A stretch of DNA of 64,000 nt, taken from NCBI GenBank assembly GCA_021613535.1, contig CP075497.1, positions 1,426,001 to 1,490,000 of the forward strand, read 5' to 3'. Origin of the DNA: Adineta vaga (Eukaryota > Animalia > Rotifera). The position numbers and the translations under genes are program-made. Positions 1 through 8,373 of the stretch are shown here, piece after piece (position 1 is the first letter of the stretch; every line of letters begins with the position of its first letter). Under the pieces are notes generated by a model. That model had not been told where the DNA came from. It saw only the letters and a list, made by a program, of their open reading frames with translations, and made no database searches.

Positions 1-1023
1 TAAGTAAATATATACCAAATAGAAGTCGTTTTCATCCAAGACAAATAGTTGGCGTTACGTGTACACAAAATGTATTGAAACGAGAATATGAATACATGAT
101 CAATCTCAATTGCTATGTGAGTATAATTATATATGTATATATCTGCTCGATTTCAGTTTAATAATAATATTATTTTTCTTTCGTTTCAGTTTGATCATCT
201 CCCACAGACTTTTCATGTATGGTACACTTTACCATGGGCTTTTGATCAATTTTTTACATTGAAAAAGTCAAATCAATACATAACTAAAGTAGAAACATGT
301 GCTCCATCACAATGCAATTCATCCATGATTTATACATCTCAACTTCGTACACTTGATATATCTCAAAATAAATCATTACCGTCAATTGTTTCAATGCCGC
401 ATGTTGTTCAATTCAATCGTATTAATACAGTTCATTTGTCATTTCATGATTGACCTTCTGGTTTACATCTTTCAAATCTTCATCATATTACATTAACAAA
501 TAATCTTACTGCATTAAAAACCGTCTCCTTATTTCCACGTACTATTCGTTCAATCCAACTAATATTTCATGCTCGTATGCCAAACTTTGTTTGTACTGAT
601 TGGTCTGTTCTTCCTTCACTTTCGTCTTTATCAAAACTCACTTCATTACGAATCATTTTCCACGATATGAATATAAGTTTTGATGAAAATATTTGTCAAA
701 TTATCGCTGAAACAGCATCAATACTTGTTCATTTTGACATTTGTTTTCGACGACAGTCCGATGTAATAACAGAACCTGATGATTTTAATCCACCTAATGT
801 AGTAGAACCTTTCATTTGGGATATGTATAATATAGAACCTGATCTTGTTATTGGAGAGGACGGTAATCTTGGTGTTGGTGCTTTACGTTTTCAGAAATCA
901 ATCATTATGAATTATCAAAAATCTATCGAAGAAATACACCGTCGCATTGTAAGTTTATCATTTTGTGTTAAACTGCTCATTGTTGTAGAAGAAGGAAAGT
1001 GTGGATTGACTGTTTGGTTCTAA
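1..1023 (+). pseudogene. 3' part of an LRR/F-box-associated-like hypothetical gene interrupted by an in-frame TGA
   Basis: ORFs 133-453 and 577-1023 are in the same frame, separated by one TGA (451-453) and 41 open codons. LRR-like phrases are present (LRTLDISQN, LSSLSKLTSLRI). A probable intron lies at ~117-190. The gene is cut by the window edge. Confidence 0.5.
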
Positions 1024-2418
1024 TTTTGTCATAATAAATAAATGATACAAATGAATTCTGTAAAATTTTCAAATAGATGATTTATTGAGGAACATATAAT
1101 GGAGATAGGAATGAATAGATAGAATAAATTAACAACTTTTTGTTTTTATTTTTCTTATTTATAAAATATTAGATTACGAAATATATCAAACTCCAATAAG
1201 TTAATTTTTCTTAACTGAATTATTTATTTTGTTGGTCAGTCATTTGTTGATAAATACGTGGAAGAATCTTTTAATTCGATTTCTTTGTCTGTTCAAGTTA
1301 TGTTTGAACTTTTTTTCCAATAAACTCAAATGATTTCCGATTGGTTTATTCTGAAAAGAAAAAAAACGAAAGAAATTTTTTAAAATTGAATACAAATTGC
1401 AATCATAGTATCAATAACTGTTTGATAATTGATTTAGTTCATTCGATGATCCATGAAATAAAAAACTTCACTTTTATTTTCTTCAGGACGATTTTCAAGT
1501 TTAAGATATTCTAAATGAATATTTACCAAATGAACAAATCTATTCAGAAAAAAAGATGAAAACAGATATTATCTCTTACTCTTTTTTTAAGATCTACAAA
1601 ATTGATTTTAACTGTTAAAACATCTTCATAACTATTATCAATCACCTACATTCGTTTCATATCGATTTGTATGTGTTATAAATGTGTAGGATAAGACATG
1701 GACAGTTTCAAGAATATGATAATATAGAGTTTCCTGTAGTTGATTTCACATGTTTGTAGGAAACGAAACTCATGTATTTTGATTCAGTAAGATTTTCTAA
1801 TCGAAGTTCTTTCTCAAACTGCTCCATAGCAGAGATTCGAGTAAACTCAATTTAACCTTACAAATCTTTCCGTTCTCATGCGAGAAATTTAGTTGATCTT
1901 TATTCTTTGATTTCGCAATGCTGAGAAATGATGATATTTTTTTTCATTAATAGAAAAGTGTTGCTCTGGTAGATCAGTGTTGCCACCGATCCACACGATT
2001 TCGTCATCGCAACTTGTATTTTTCCGTAACGATATTTACCTCTTGGTAAGTTGTAATAAGCAATTTGTCCAGATGAGGTGTGGAGCAAGATGTTTTTGTT
2101 GTCCCTACATCTATTATTTTGGAAGAAGCAAACGAAAAGTGCAAAGTGTAGAGACATAGTAGATGTCGTGTTCCACACGTCGTGAAGACAAATTGCTTAT
2201 TAAAACTTACCAAGAGGTAAATATTCTTACGGATTTTTGAATTAAAAAAACAAACAGAAAATTTTTTCAAATTTAAATAAAAAGAAACAAAGAAGATATC
2301 TGTGAAACGAGTGATTGTAGCGTGATTCTTGTCAGCTCATTCTGTGCTCTATTTCAATTTATTCTTCTATTATATACTTTCATTAACCTTTCCTTACCTT
2401 TGGTTACGAAATTTTATA

Positions 2419-3615
2419 ATGTCGTTTCACCAATTGATACGGGAAGCAGTTTTGCTTACATTGATTAAAGGTAGCGATCGAATCGATCGCACAGGAATGA
2501 TTAATGCTCTCGGTCAGATTATTCCAGTGTCAGATATTGACTCGTTTGGAAATCTCGGAAATTTCTCTGAATGGTACGTCATCTTTAAAACAACCAATGC
2601 AAGAGAAATTATTCTTAAAAGTAATGAATTTAAAGTGGGTGATCAAACATTTATGATTAGCGAACCATACAAACATGTCAAAATTATTAGATTACTTAAT
2701 GTTCCACCAGCTATTTCAGACGACGATATTCGATCAATTGCTTCAAAATGGGGAGGTTTAGTTCTTAATGTTGATGTAGAAAAACTGCCACAACCTTTTG
2801 AAACAATCAAAACATTCGTACGTCGCATACGTATTCGTTTTTTTACACGTCAAGACGAAGAAAAAGTACCTATTAGTATTCGTTATAATGGTTACACGTT
2901 CTCAGTCAATCTTGAAGGTCGTCAAAAAGTTTGTTATAGATGCAAACAAGCTGGTCATATCAAAGCGGAATGTAAAGTTTTAAAATGTCATAAATGCTTT
3001 ACACTTGGACATGATGATCCATTATGCCAACAGAATAAATCATATGCAGCTGCAGTTAGTGAAGCGTCAGTCAACATTTTTTCTACAAACTCACCAGATG
3101 TTCAAGGTAATACGGATGTTGAATCCACTCCAGTTGGACAGGTAGTTAAAACAACAACGGCTTCACAAAAGCGGAAAAAAAAAGTTTGTCCTCGTTGTCA
3201 GCAACCCGGTCACAAACCCAAAGATTGCTCTTTTCAGCAAAATCTTAATATTCAACCTGGAAAAGAAGATACAAATAATCATATTATTTCCATCGAAGAA
3301 GTCCAACAAACAACAACAACTTTAACAAATACAAAAGCTGGACCAGAAAATGAAGACAATGTAATACTTGATCCACAACAGTCCACATTATTAGAGGATC
3401 AAAATGAAAAAGCTGTGGTTGCTACAATAGCCACATCATTACAAGAACGTATAATGTATCAAGCATACAAGAACTCAACAAGTGATTTTAAACGAACATG
3501 TGCAGATCGAAGCATCGATTCGGATCTTGAAGTAGACCCAAAGAAAGCTCACACATACGACTCTTCAACCTCTGTCATGGACGAGCAGGAGGAGGGAGAA
3601 GTTAACGACCAATAA
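2419..3615 (+). CDS. LINE ORF1, gag-like nucleic-acid-binding protein with three CCHC zinc knuckles
   Basis: Knuckles CYRCKQAGHIKAEC, CHKCFTLGHDDPLC and CPRCQQPGHKPKDC. The first ATG is at 2419 (the ORF track starts upstream at a TTG). Confidence 0.9.
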   Translation: MSFHQLIREAVLLTLIKGSDRIDRTGMINALGQIIPVSDIDSFGNLGNFSEWYVIFKTTNAREIILKSNEFKVGDQTFMISEPYKHVKIIRLLNVPPAISDDDIRSIASKWGGLVLNVDVEKLPQPFETIKTFVRRIRIRFFTRQDEEKVPISIRYNGYTFSVNLEGRQKVCYRCKQAGHIKAECKVLKCHKCFTLGHDDPLCQQNKSYAAAVSEASVNIFSTNSPDVQGNTDVESTPVGQVVKTTTASQKRKKKVCPRCQQPGHKPKDCSFQQNLNIQPGKEDTNNHIISIEEVQQTTTTLTNTKAGPENEDNVILDPQQSTLLEDQNEKAVVATIATSLQERIMYQAYKNSTSDFKRTCADRSIDSDLEVDPKKAHTYDSSTSVMDEQEEGEVNDQ

Positions 3616-3781
3616 CTCTCCTTCTCACAAGTACAAAATTACACAAAAGCTTCAAAATAAATATATATACACATGTATTTATAATATTCAAAAAAAAAAA
3701 ATTAATTAATTAAAAATTTAAAAAAAAAGAAAAAAAAATTTAAACTATAAAATTCTTATTGATTAAACAATTACGTCAAAC

Positions 3782-6700
3782 ATGATTACAATTTTCTCAT
3801 TTAACATCCGTGGCATTGTAACGGTTAATAAACAATCATTATTTCGAGAATGGCTCAAAGTTAATCCGCATGATATTGTTCTTCTACAAGAATTACATAT
3901 TACGTCGAAACAACAATTAGATGTCTTCAAACAATCATTTACTGATTATGCTATTTTCTGTAGTCTCGGAACGTGGTCAGCCGGTGGTGTAATGGTCATG
4001 ATAAAACACAAATTACTCATTATTGATTCTGGTGTAGATCATAGTGGACGAATAGCCTTCGCCAAAATTATAATCAACAATTGTCCTATTACATTAGCTA
4101 GCGTTTATGCACCAACACAAGTAAATGAAAGGTGTGATTTTTTCAAAGATCTTCATTTATATATTCCAACATCTCGGTGGATGGTGATTGGAGGTGATTT
4201 TAATTGTATTGCTGATCCAACAAAAGATCGTCTTCGCCAAGAAGGTCGAAATGATCAACGATCTTATTCAACTCTCGATAGTGAATTTCTACAACCATTA
4301 TCCTTGATCGAACTATATCGCTCAAAACACCCTCGTTCAATCATATACTCTTACCACAATGAATCCAGAAACATACACAGCCGCATCGACTTTTTCTTTG
4401 GAACGAAGGTTATACGCAAAAACATCTTGCATATTACTTATACACCCGTTGGCATTTCAGATCATGATGGAATGTCACTTCATTTATCATCACCTCCAAC
4501 AACAACAACAGAATACCATAGATGGATATGTAATGGCGAAGTGATTAAAAGACCAAGTTTTCTACCTCGTTTTCAAAAAATATGGGAAGTACTCAAAAAG
4601 TCTTCGAATTTTGAAGATCTTGCCTGGTGGTCAGATTTAAAAACTAGTTTAATTTTGCTCTTACAAGATGAACAAAAACAAATGGTCGCTGAATCACGAA
4701 ATGGTATTAAATGTCTTCAAGAACGTTATCGCATACTTGCAACGAATGCTTCAGCCAACAATTTAAAGGAGATGGATAAAATTCGTGATACCATCCACGA
4801 CACTTTGGTCAAAAAAGTAATGGCAAATAATCATGGACACGGTGATAAAACAACTCAAGAACTTGGAGAAATTGCTCGTTCACGATTATCAAATACACGT
4901 GCAAATCAGTCTGTTATCCACTTTCTCAACCATCCAGTGAAAGGACGTGTAGAGGAAATTGACGACATGCTCGAAGTTGCCACACTTTTTTATCATGAAT
5001 TGTATAAAGAGAAACCTATCAATATGTCATCATGGAGTGAATTGTTCGCTGATTTACCAAAATTAAGTGAAGAAGATCGTGAATTATTAGATCGAGAAAT
5101 ATCAGTATCGGAATGCTTTAATGCACTTCGTGCTATTCCTGATCAAAGATCGCCAGGTGATGATGGAATTACTGCTGAGGTGTGGCGATTGATTTTCCCT
5201 ACCATTGGCAGCCATTACATTCAAATGATTAACACTGCTAAAACAAAAGGTCAATTCCATCCTAAATTTCTTCAAGCATTGTTAACTCTCCTCAAGAAAA
5301 AGAACAAATCCGACGGGTCGATGAAAGATTTTCGACCTATCTCCCTGATGAACATCGATTACAAGATATTATCAAAGGTACTTAGTACACGTCTACGAAA
5401 GGTGATTGCCAACATCATTCATCCTGACCAAACATGTTCAGTTCCTGGCCGGTCAATACAGGACAATGTCATTTTAATCAGATCAATCATTGAATACCAA
5501 AGACGAATTCGTGATCCGATTGGGATAGTTTTATGGGATCAGGAGAAAGCTTTTGATAGGATTAACCATCAATATTTAGTAGGAGTATTAAATGCTTTTG
5601 GTTTTACTTCCAATATCATCAATTGGATAAAACTTCTCTATGGCAACGGATCCTTTAGAATCAAATTAAACAATTACATCTCTACGTCGATTGTTTTTAG
5701 TTCGGGCGTCAGGCAGGGTTGCAGCCTATCAGGCTTATTATTTATTATTTGTCTCGAACCACTTCTAAATCGTATACGATTAAATCAATCAATTCCTGGT
5801 GCCTTTCTACCTGGAAGTCAGTTTAAAGCTATTCGCCAAATTATTTTTCCAATTAATGACAATATACTCAACACGGAACAAGTTAAAATCAAAACCATAG
5901 CTTACGCCGATGATATCAACACACTTGTACGAAACCGCGATGAAGAAAGATCAACAATGGACATGTTTGATTTATATAGTCAAGCATCAGGAGCAAAAGT
6001 CAACAGCTCCAAAACCGAAATACTATGGATATCAGATTGGCTGACTCCACCATATTTTGAAGCCAAAATTAATTGCGAATGGTGTATCTTTCTGGGTATT
6101 CCAATGGATACAAAAGGACAACTGCCACCACTCGAATTGGAAAAGAAAGTAAATAGTATCAAACAACAGATTGGATATTGGTCCTCAATTAACCTTTCTC
6201 TAAATGAACGAGTAACGGTGTTGAAAGTTTTTATTTTGAGTCAATTGATATATTGGTTATCACTCTCAGTTATTCCGAAGAAAGTGGTGGCAAAGCTGCA
6301 AAGTATGTTTGTGAAGTTCTTCTGGTCTTCTTTGGGTCCTAGAATTCATTTAAGAACAATTATCGGTCATAAACATGATGGAGGTTATAGTTTACCGCAC
6401 CTTCAAGCAATGATCGAAGCACTTCGAATTAAATGTGGTTCTCAACTGATCAATCCATCGCATTCGGCTCCATGGAAATTTTATGCTTTAATAGAAACAG
6501 GTTTTCAATTACGACAATATGCCCCACGTCTTTGGTCAAACCTGATACCTCACATCGAGAAAGGCGATTCCTTCTTCCATGAAGTTGCATCAAATACTGC
6601 AAAGTGGCTGAAAGCAGGTGGAAGTCTAAATTTACAACAAAATCAACCATCCTTTTACTGGCAAATAGTTAACCGATTTTACTTTCGTCATCCTGTTTCT

Positions 6701-7195
6701 GTAAGTAGAGTTCCACATTTAAAAAATATCAATTTTTTCCGATTGCTGAGAGAAAGCTTGCCCAGTTATACACTGGACTTTTGGATGATCTTAGCCAATT
6801 ATGGAATTCATACTCGATCACGTACCGGCCACAACGAAAATACAAGAAAATGCCTTTTATGCAACGAAGTCGAAACTCCATCTCATCTTTTCACGAAATG
6901 CTCCGCGTTAAACAAGCTCTTTGATTGTCTCAACGACAGATTAGGATCAATCTGTGGTAATAAAATTAGTAAAACAACAATCGATATTATATACCTCAAA
7001 GAAATCAATCAGTTATCGACCATTCGTCAAATACGGAAGAATATCGTTTTTATGATCGGCAACTATTTATTTTCCATATGGAAATATCGAAATATCGCAA
7101 AACATCAATGCAGTCGAAATTTTGAATTAGATCCATCCATGGCAACCCGACTCTTCTTAACAACCATCAAACGGTTACCTTTTGATGTTGGTTAG
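3782..7195 (+). CDS. LINE ORF2: APE endonuclease + reverse transcriptase + C-terminal CCHC finger
   Basis: APE motifs NIRG, LQE, GGDFN, SRID and SDH. RT motifs PGDDG, FRPISLMN, DQEKAFD, GVRQGCSLS and YADD. C-terminal CLLC...HLFTKC. Confidence 0.96.
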   Translation: MITIFSFNIRGIVTVNKQSLFREWLKVNPHDIVLLQELHITSKQQLDVFKQSFTDYAIFCSLGTWSAGGVMVMIKHKLLIIDSGVDHSGRIAFAKIIINNCPITLASVYAPTQVNERCDFFKDLHLYIPTSRWMVIGGDFNCIADPTKDRLRQEGRNDQRSYSTLDSEFLQPLSLIELYRSKHPRSIIYSYHNESRNIHSRIDFFFGTKVIRKNILHITYTPVGISDHDGMSLHLSSPPTTTTEYHRWICNGEVIKRPSFLPRFQKIWEVLKKSSNFEDLAWWSDLKTSLILLLQDEQKQMVAESRNGIKCLQERYRILATNASANNLKEMDKIRDTIHDTLVKKVMANNHGHGDKTTQELGEIARSRLSNTRANQSVIHFLNHPVKGRVEEIDDMLEVATLFYHELYKEKPINMSSWSELFADLPKLSEEDRELLDREISVSECFNALRAIPDQRSPGDDGITAEVWRLIFPTIGSHYIQMINTAKTKGQFHPKFLQALLTLLKKKNKSDGSMKDFRPISLMNIDYKILSKVLSTRLRKVIANIIHPDQTCSVPGRSIQDNVILIRSIIEYQRRIRDPIGIVLWDQEKAFDRINHQYLVGVLNAFGFTSNIINWIKLLYGNGSFRIKLNNYISTSIVFSSGVRQGCSLSGLLFIICLEPLLNRIRLNQSIPGAFLPGSQFKAIRQIIFPINDNILNTEQVKIKTIAYADDINTLVRNRDEERSTMDMFDLYSQASGAKVNSSKTEILWISDWLTPPYFEAKINCEWCIFLGIPMDTKGQLPPLELEKKVNSIKQQIGYWSSINLSLNERVTVLKVFILSQLIYWLSLSVIPKKVVAKLQSMFVKFFWSSLGPRIHLRTIIGHKHDGGYSLPHLQAMIEALRIKCGSQLINPSHSAPWKFYALIETGFQLRQYAPRLWSNLIPHIEKGDSFFHEVASNTAKWLKAGGSLNLQQNQPSFYWQIVNRFYFRHPVSVSRVPHLKNINFFRLLRESLPSYTLDFWMILANYGIHTRSRTGHNENTRKCLLCNEVETPSHLFTKCSALNKLFDCLNDRLGSICGNKISKTTIDIIYLKEINQLSTIRQIRKNIVFMIGNYLFSIWKYRNIAKHQCSRNFELDPSMATRLFLTTIKRLPFDVG

Positions 7196-8373
7196 TCTAG
7201 TCATTACACTAACATACTTGTTTTTTCAAGTTTAATTTAGTTGTTTTTTGTCATGGATGAAAATAAATAAATCTAGAGGAAAAAAAAAAAAAAAAAATCC
7301 TTGCGGATAAAATACATGTTGCGATGACGAAATCGTGCGGATCGGTGGCAACACTGATCTGCCAGAGCGACACTTTCATCTAAAATTAAATTGACATCTA
7401 TTCAAATGGAATCTTGTGGGTGTGGGAGATTACACACGTTGGTTGCAAGACTCCTCATGTGAAGTCAGAAACTTCAATATATTTTCTGAAGAAATGGATC
7501 AAATATATAATCAATAATAAATAACTCTCTTTATATGCAAAAAAAAGACATCAGCTGTCTTCGTATTTTGCTGTATTGTTTGAAGTTCAGATAGGTAAAA
7601 TCAAAACTTTCTTTCTAATGAATTTTGATCACTCATGTAGAACTTTGAAGTTATTTTTCGTTATATATCGATAAGTTTAGTCAATTATATGATATCGTTA
7701 GAACTTGATTAAACATTTAGTTTTTGAAAGAGTAAGTTGATGCTGAAACATGCTCATTTTTCAGATCATGAAAGATACGAACAAAAAGTTTTACATTCTA
7801 GTTTCTTCGTTGATTATGATTCAAATTTGATTGATCTGAGTATCACAAAGAATAATATAACAAAGATATTCAATAAATAATTTCATTAATAATTGTCGAT
7901 ATGAAATATAAAGAAATTCTTTAACGTTTGGGAAAAAAATCTCCATCTCTGAAAAATTTTCATATGAGAGCAGTGATAAAAATGAATACTTGCTTTTGAA
8001 AAAGATTAAACTCATCTTCTTGAAACTTATTTATTGATCGAAAAATATTTGTATAAATTTCAATATATCTTTGAAAGATGAACTTTTCAATCAATATAGA
8101 TCATCTAAAATTTCGAATATTTAGAGAATCAAAATTACATCTGACTGTGAAACAATAATTGAAATTGTATTAGTATATTTAAATACATGATTAAATCAGC
8201 GTTTGAGAAGGAAGAAAACACACGATAATCACCTATAATATAATAAAATTATTATCGATCATTAATTTCAACGTAGAAAATAATATATTGTGCTTTTTTG
8301 TCTTTTGGAAAATTCATGTGTTCAAAAAGAAAAGAAAAAATTTTATCATAAAAACTTATATATTTTATGCTTA

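Follow-up and report, generated by a model that had tools for sequence, protein, structure and literature searches.

The 64,000-nt stretch of the Adineta vaga genome analysed here (C6:1426001-1490000 of the 100.8-Mb assembly in six pieces; hereafter the window) contains a complete long interspersed nuclear element (LINE) lodged in one arm of a long palindrome, and this arrangement raises the question of what the palindrome is and why the LINE stands at that particular point. The first-pass annotation of the window had taken the palindrome for a foldback or miniature inverted-repeat transposable element (MITE) serving as the target of a site-specific LINE of the L1/Tx1 type. The results presented below support the site-specific LINE and lead to a different view of its target. 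The locus as a whole is best explained, with a probability of about 0.88, as a pair of spliced-leader (SL) RNA genes whose right-hand gene has been interrupted by the sequence-specific element Tx1_Av.

Reconstruction of the empty site

A repeat search of the window detected two sets of inverted arms, an inner one (2023-2109 and 2147-2233; 87 nt, 79% complementary) and an outer one (1955-2022 and 7309-7376; 68 nt, 94%) with 5286 nt between its arms. The insert, 2235-7297, terminates in a tail of 18 A residues (7280-7297) and is bounded by an imperfect 11-nt repeat, TTCTTACGGAT at 2224-2234 and TCCTTGCGGAT at 7298-7308. When the insert was deleted together with one copy of this repeat, a near-palindrome of 350 bp was obtained, in agreement with the earlier proposal that excision would restore such a structure. 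The reconstructed sequence matched ten unbroken dispersed copies of the genome from end to end with 89-95% identity, and the cluster (array) copies with 82-85% identity. Because the ten unbroken copies match the whole 350 bp, the empty site does exist. Two further details that had been read from the window were also confirmed, namely that both open reading frames (ORFs) of the LINE are uninterrupted (398 and 1137 aa for ORF1 and ORF2, respectively) and that the left arm retains an unoccupied, inverted copy of the target (minus strand, ~2022-2034). Both junctions of the LINE were spanned with no mismatches by contigs of an independent DNA run from 2013, which possibly derives from the assembly's own source sample.

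The palindrome as a pair of predicted SL RNA genes

The rotifer SL exon, published as GGCTTATTACAACTTACCAAGAG (PMC3795323, Table 1), is cut from SL RNAs of ~100 nt and is carried by over half of the mRNAs of bdelloids (PMC3795323, PMC1925144). The left arm of the palindrome carries GCTTATTACAACTTACCAAGAG followed by GTAAAT, which matches the published exon at 22 of 22 positions, and the right arm carries an exon that matches at 21 of 22 positions and is likewise followed by GTAAAT. A whole-genome search for the exon plus donor returned 57 occurrences (33 of them exact; none for the reversed control), which are mostly arranged as minus/plus pairs 161 nt apart. The conserved unit extends ~109 nt from the exon start and has GCCAGAGCAACACTTTT at its 3' end. 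In the common fold of 19 copies taken from the A. vaga genome and from contigs of other bdelloids, one stem spans the splice donor, and the 3' stem contains six pairs with compensatory changes. The exon, the donor, the ~109-nt unit and the covarying fold argue that each arm is an SL RNA gene, so that the apparent foldback consists of two SL genes that diverge from a common 133-bp spacer and are transcribed away from it. A GTGTAGAGACA-like motif is kept in the spacer upstream of the SL genes, resembles a motif located 5' of the U2 small nuclear RNA (snRNA) genes of the same clusters, and presumably acts as a promoter element.

Rfam and tRNA scans of the palindrome gave no match, the Rfam blank being uninformative since Rfam apparently lacks a rotifer SL family. 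In a sequencing run guessed to be RNA (X4; compared with window 1900-2085), contigs start with the SL exon and continue into unrelated sequence, which fits trans-spliced mRNAs but is not proof of them.

An exon variant with A instead of C at position 9 (GCTTATTAAAAC...) is recurrent in the genome, being present at window 2195-2216 and in at least eight other SL genes (for example at C1:1639461, C4:2216454, C6:3847902 and C6:6374888), as a rule in the right-hand member of a dispersed pair; these genes may encode a second type of leader or be pseudogenes. As regards the surroundings of the locus, ~2.2 kb around the SL pair (window 578-2234 plus 7309-7863), including a 148-aa ORF at 577-1023, is found again at C4:14063632-14066902 (L002) with 95-98% identity, and this duplicate is a recent segmental duplication of the SL unit plus its neighbourhood. 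In the SL units nearest to the window copy (L002 at ~1743, minus strand, and L003 at ~1743) the right-hand gene reads ATACCATCAGAAAAATAC at the LINE site, a sequence that lacks three bases relative to other copies and resembles neither flank of the window LINE.

Identification of the insert as Tx1_Av

Residues 2-880 of ORF2 are collinear with human L1 ORF2p (E 1e-62; E 1e-18 against R2 proteins), and its apurinic/apyrimidinic endonuclease (APE) domain, which is N-terminal, aligns to human L1 endonuclease structures (E 1e-13); a Pfam search of ORF2 detected no restriction-like endonuclease. Close to the C terminus, C1024, C1027, H1035 and C1040 are invariant in 15 homologues. The closest ORF2 homologues come from Rotaria socialis, R. 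magnacalcarata and Adineta steineri. A direct DNA repeat (D3) in ORF1 covers a second KxCxxCxxxGH-like segment, and inspection by eye suggests that it encodes a second CCHC knuckle.

All five fragments of the reverse transcriptase (RT) core printed for Tx1_Av in supplement file 17 of Nowell et al. 2021 (eLife) are identical to ORF2 residues 492-575, and in the library of these authors the family is filed as LINE/L1-Tx1#Tx1_Av. This exact match identifies the insert as a member of the catalogued Tx1_Av family. Together with the APE and RT domains and the alignment to L1 ORF2p, it is in line with the initial classification of the LINE as L1/Tx1-type. Protein searches with the RT (single-sequence, profile and ESM Atlas) returned no protein named L1 or Tx1 among their matches.

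All full-length genomic copies occupy the same site of an SL gene

DNA and protein searches revealed only three full-length copies in the genome (copies 1 to 3; Table 1), and all other RT matches were at most 28% identical. In all three cases the SL gene is broken after ...GGTAAATATNNNACGGAT and continues past the poly(A), inside one common intron stretch of ~12 nt, the LINE has the orientation of the SL gene, and the flanks outside the gene pairs are unrelated. Three of the 57 SL genes are thus occupied. The insertion point in the window lies ~18 nt past the splice donor (RNA positions ~30-41), within a linker flanked by the conserved sequences GGTAAAT and AAATACATGTTGCG. Three intact U2 genes are located at most 3 kb from copy 2, and none of them is occupied. 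A tabulation of the sequence after each poly(A), which had been suggested as a check of target specificity, hence yields the same SL-gene stretch for each full-length copy, and the proposal of a target-specific LINE that uses a multicopy sequence as safe harbour agrees with these data and with the relatives described below, the harbour being provided by the multicopy SL genes.

The pairwise identities of the LINE bodies are 96.0%, 96.0% and 99.84%, and those of the corresponding host gene pairs are 72%, 87% and 75%, respectively. Copies 2 and 3, in particular, differ by 8 substitutions in 5 kb, and their host pairs are 75% identical. The length of the poly(A) and the flanking variable bases also vary among the three copies. 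Since the LINEs are nearly identical and their host pairs are diverged, the three insertions are independent, which rules out both a duplication of the occupied unit and a movement of the composite as a DNA element.

Relatives in other bdelloids and a probable switch to U2 genes

Relatives of the window element were collected from public assemblies and metagenomes, and their identities are given for ORF2 with respect to that element. The relatives located at the SL site represent at least six further lineages beyond A. vaga, and all of them share the orientation of the gene and the site (Table 1). Their 3' junctions fall within ~6 bases and their 5' junctions within ~4 bases, and all of them are located in the linker, variable and unpaired, that connects the donor stem with the conserved 3' part.

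In two Rotaria elements, from R. magnacalcarata (L087; ORF2 50%; 3382-3575) and R. socialis (L088; 48%; 6303-6489), the poly(A) is followed by GTATCTGTTCTCGTCGG..., which corresponds to U2 snRNA starting at nt 38 (Rfam U2 scores of 89.9 and 69.5 bits, respectively; intact bdelloid U2 served for comparison) and places the insertion at U2 nt ~37/38. These junctions indicate that one Rotaria sub-lineage targets U2 genes. A quick maximum-likelihood search, with branch support from the Shimodaira-Hasegawa-like approximate likelihood ratio test (SH-aLRT) and with several rows lacking an assigned target, recovered the rotifer family as one clade (SH-aLRT 100). The U2 pair grouped with the SL element of A. 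steineri (91), inside a clade that contains a further SL element (98), and SL-targeting elements were found on both sides of the deepest split of the family. With SL elements on both sides of this split and the U2 pair nested, SL targeting tentatively looks ancestral and U2 targeting derived.

The two kinds of target are neighbours. In the cluster of copy 2, U2 genes are interleaved with SL genes (L068:2320-2515, 3242-3438 and 4370-4565, corresponding to C5:10913319-10915565), intact U2 genes also stand among SL genes in other taxa (L073:303-498 and L078:5665-5860), and a similar GTGT..AGACA motif is found ~50 nt upstream of both SL and U2 genes.

Two other relatives showed a different context. 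The 3' region of a metagenome relative with 50% identity (L074:3330-3594) runs into G-rich repeats of the TTTGGG/GGGTTTTGGG type and not into an SL gene, which may reflect a telomere-like context. In a further relative, L071, a ~17-nt repeat was considered as a target duplication and rejected, since its upstream copy belongs to the 5' untranslated region (UTR) of the LINE; a short stretch resembling the element's own 5'UTR follows the poly(A) of L071.

Proposed mechanism of insertion and origin of the 5' junction

Elements of this class are established to insert by target-primed reverse transcription at a sequence-specific nick, a mechanism with which the poly(A) junction, fixed site and orientation of the LINEs described above are consistent. 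In Tx1_Av, the APE-type endonuclease, possibly with other parts of the protein, would nick the bottom strand in the variable single-stranded linker that leads from SL stem-loop I to the conserved 3' stems, and reverse transcription would then be primed at the poly(A) tail. The analogy to Tx1L and R1 (PMC8869645, PMC1919474) suggests that the APE domain sets the target specificity. The insertion would disable one of ~57 redundant SL genes, at a small cost to a gene-dense genome.

The 5' junction suggests an additional step. Of the seven elements for which both junctions are available, six have an apparent target duplication with unequal halves, which show up to six mismatches in eleven bases and belong to different SL-gene variants. 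The promoter region and the downstream flank of copy 2 are of the local array type, the flank being identical over ~70 nt to a neighbour gene reading GGTATATATCGAAAAAGATAAAATAC, and the 18 nt between its SL exon and the LINE are GTAAATATCTTCACGGAT, which is another SL variant. The exon of copy 3 is a variant (A at position 9) that is absent from the other genes read in its array. Moreover, no 5'-truncated copy of the LINE was found in an SL gene of the A. vaga genome. The origin of the duplication halves from different SL variants suggests that the LINE RNA starts at the start of the SL gene. According to this model, to which we assign about even odds, the LINE would be transcribed from the SL gene's own start, its RNA would be headed by the SL exon and the first 18 bases of the intron, and homology of this leader to the target would make the 5' junction.

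A wider and more speculative version, which we hold to be somewhat less probable than its negation, is that the LINE has no promoter of its own and borrows the snRNA-type promoter of the SL gene, that its RNA thereby mimics a trans-spliced mRNA, that the leader guides the 5' junction, and that this dependence permitted the switch to U2. A leader-guided 5' junction would explain both the mixed-variant duplication halves and the absence of 5'-truncated copies in SL genes, and because SL and U2 genes are interleaved and have a common upstream motif, dependence on a borrowed promoter would have allowed the Rotaria switch to U2. Of the proposals made here, the model of a borrowed promoter and leader and the switch from SL to U2 genes merit testing.

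Alternative explanations

The possibility that the palindrome is a dispersed foldback or MITE transposon targeted by the LINE, with a composite that is perhaps itself mobile as in the case of Xenopus Tx1L within Tx1D, was the one initially put forward for this locus. The palindrome is indeed multicopy, both dispersed and clustered, as the check then proposed for its copy number has shown, and DNA transposons are known targets of Tx1-clade elements (PMC4494074). Nevertheless, each arm has the exon, the donor and the covarying stems of an SL RNA gene, and the homology among ten aligned empty copies runs 200-500 bp past the ends of the palindrome, defining a ~1-kb unit with ragged borders that has neither terminal repeats nor a target duplication around the palindrome. 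As to mobility, the three LINE-bearing units differ much more than their LINEs, and therefore the composite did not spread as a unit. The MITE reading was rejected on these grounds, and it receives the lowest probability of all the explanations considered; for annotation purposes, palindromes of this kind should be labelled as SL RNA gene pairs and not as foldback transposons. A second explanation, hardly more probable, is that all copies go back to one ancestral insertion, the occupied SL unit having been multiplied by duplication, unequal crossing-over or gene conversion and not by sequence-specific integration. Such processes act in tandem SL arrays, L078 has a truncated copy that is duplicated along with its SL flank with a 3.4-kb period, and copies 2 and 3 share a chromosome. 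This would not account, however, for the fact that the 8 substitutions between copies 2 and 3 accompany host pairs of 75% identity, promoter and 3' parts included, nor for the different poly(A) tails and junction bases; besides, copy 1 belongs to a dispersed unit of a different chromosome, and in different genera the site is occupied by LINE lineages that are only 44-65% identical.

It is also very improbable, though a little less so than the spread of one insertion, that integration is weakly specific and that only the insertions in redundant SL genes have survived selection in a compact genome. A genome that is gene-dense and poor in transposable elements (PMC7943196) would favour such survivorship, and one old 3' fragment and one relative do lie outside SL genes. 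Yet selection cannot account for the recurrence of one ~12-nt window and one orientation in at least 10 events from at least 7 lineages, given that insertions elsewhere in SL genes or in their spacers would be equally harmless, and the junction is not a TTTT/AA-type site of the kind used by non-specific L1 elements.

Several observations weigh against an SL gene pair interrupted by a sequence-specific Tx1_Av, or against the leader model built on it. Only three copies are present in the genome. A 3' fragment of ~125 nt from an older relative, which shows 77% identity and has a short A tail, is found at a non-SL position, C4:3807987-3808091 (L034, ~1500-1605); it is an off-target or captured fragment, and off-target events do occur. 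The relative with 65% identity, L071 (1400-7589), is full-length and has flanks that are neither SL nor U2 nor any Rfam family. The placement of the element in Tx1 as opposed to L1 rests on the published label and not on a tree with named references, and in the SL RNA no clear Sm-binding motif was recognised and no Rfam family matches. With respect to the leader, copies 2 and 3, whose bodies are near-identical, differ at 4 of 40 leader positions, and therefore a single shared donor fails to explain them both; unequal duplication halves could also result from gene conversion among SL genes. Finally, in three runs guessed to be RNA, most of the LINE is covered by low-depth contigs with 95-99% identity to the window, and such runs showed neither joints nor a contig across the SL-LINE junction.

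Table 1. Features of the locus in the window, full-length copies of Tx1_Av in the A. vaga genome, and relatives at the SL site in other bdelloids (ORF2 identity to the window element)
Feature	Position or locus	Strand	Observations
Predicted SL RNA gene, left arm, intact	1953..2061	-	22/22 SL exon match, then GTAAAT; ~109-nt unit, covarying stem
Parts of the left-arm SL gene	exon 2061->2040; GT donor 2039-2038; intron part to ~1953	-	
133-bp spacer common to the two divergent SL genes	2062..2194	.	GTGTAGAGACA-like motif ~50 nt upstream of each exon
Predicted SL RNA gene, right arm, occupied, 5' part	2195..2234	+	exon 2195-2216, A at exon position 9
First 18 intron nt of the occupied SL gene	2217-2234	+	GTAAATATTCTTACGGAT
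Tx1_Av LINE, full-length, 5063 bp	2235..7297	+	96% identity to the two other genomic copies
Non-coding parts of the LINE	5'UTR 2235-2418; spacer 3616-3781; 3'UTR 7196-7279; poly(A) 7280-7297	+	
ORF1, gag-like, with CCHC zinc knuckle, 398 aa	ATG 2419..3615	+	Pfam zf-CCHC, E 9.6e-6, one stretch
ORF2, 1137 aa: APE endonuclease, RT, weak zf-RVT	3782..7195	+	
APE-type endonuclease domain, ORF2 aa 6-228	3797..4465	+	Pfam Exo_endo_phos, E 7e-12
RT domain, ORF2 aa 506-749	5297..6028	+	Pfam RVT_1, E 3e-36
C-terminal CCHC motif, ORF2 aa ~1010-1045	6809..6916	+	Pfam zf-RVT, E 0.003, below cutoff
Downstream copy of the apparent 11-nt target duplication, TCCTTGCGGAT	7298..7308	+	2 mismatches vs 2224-2234
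Predicted SL RNA gene, right arm, occupied, 3' part	7309..7377	+	two conserved stems; terminates ...GCCAGAGCGACACTTTC
Copy 1 (window copy)	2235-7297		both frames open
Copy 2	C5:10915975-10921059		both frames open
Copy 3	C5:9902140-9907223		ORF1 open, one frameshift in ORF2
Relative, 83%	L084/L085		same site
Relative, Rotaria socialis, 64%	L089		poly(A), then GATCTTTGCTGATCAAATACAGGTTGCGATGACG
Relative, 53%	L072		head-to-head SL pair split
Relative, 51%	L091		same site
Relative, 49%	L073		head-to-head SL pair split
Relative, Adineta steineri, 48%	L086		perfect 10-nt duplication, TTTACTGATC
Relative, 44/39%	L078/L080		5'-truncated copy, tandemly duplicated with its flank

Comparison with known systems

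Bdelloid rotifers serve as a test case for how transposons persist in compact genomes in the absence of sex. A "neutral safe site" strategy was raised as a possibility by Nowell et al. 2021, and ~3 LINE copies inside a gene family of 57 copies provide a concrete example of it. The SL-to-U2 switch, nested in the family and involving two targets that are adjacent in the clusters, would in addition offer a natural pair for mapping how an APE endonuclease chooses its target.

Closest in kind to Tx1_Av are the Tx1-clade LINEs specific for small RNA genes (U2, U5, 5S and tRNA), as in the case of Keno in U2 (Kojima & Fujiwara 2004, as summarised in PMC4494074). Keno and the other Tx1 elements of small RNA genes share with Tx1_Av the APE endonuclease, the L1/Tx1 architecture, the poly(A) tail and a fixed site in a multicopy Sm-class RNA gene. 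Unlike Keno, Tx1_Av sits in SL genes, and the neighbouring U2 genes of A. vaga are empty; among its relatives, only those of Rotaria represented by L087 and L088 adjoin U2 nt 38 onward and lie, as Keno does, in U2 genes. The SL RNA gene is absent from the Tx1 targets listed in the literature examined, and no report linking Tx1_Av or any Tx1 element to SL genes was found in the full texts searched, an earlier mention being possible. The SL gene would therefore add a new target to a group already noted for small RNA genes.

The comparison with Xenopus that accompanied the initial proposal holds in part. Tx1L is a Tx1-type LINE with a sequence-specific endonuclease that inserts at one site of a repeated sequence (PMC4494074), and this logic, a LINE at one site of a repeat, applies equally to Tx1_Av. 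The kind of target does not, since Tx1D is a non-autonomous piggyBac DNA transposon and the target of Tx1_Av is a pair of RNA genes, not a mobile element. R2 and R1 in the rRNA genes are, like Tx1_Av, site-specific LINEs, although their target is different and so is, for R2, the class of nuclease. Co-transcription of R2 with its target gene has been reported, and upstream target sequence on the RNA has been proposed to aid the formation of the 5' junction (PMC4494074); in Tx1_Av a comparable co-transcription is suggested by the junctions described above.

The closest parallel in terms of target is provided by SLACS, CZAR and CRE1/CRE2 of trypanosomatids and NeSL-1 of Caenorhabditis elegans, which, like Tx1_Av, use a fixed site in SL genes as a redundant safe harbour. 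These elements belong to early-branching clades and have a restriction-like endonuclease downstream of the RT (PMC4640811), whereas Tx1_Av has an N-terminal APE endonuclease. Its insertion site is in the SL intron, ~18 nt past the donor. The likeness between Tx1_Av and the CRE and NeSL groups is convergent, and Tx1_Av is not a member of them. After the trypanosome and the nematode elements, Tx1_Av and its relatives would thus represent a third independent origin of SL-gene targeting by retrotransposons, in this case by means of an AP-type and not a restriction-like endonuclease.

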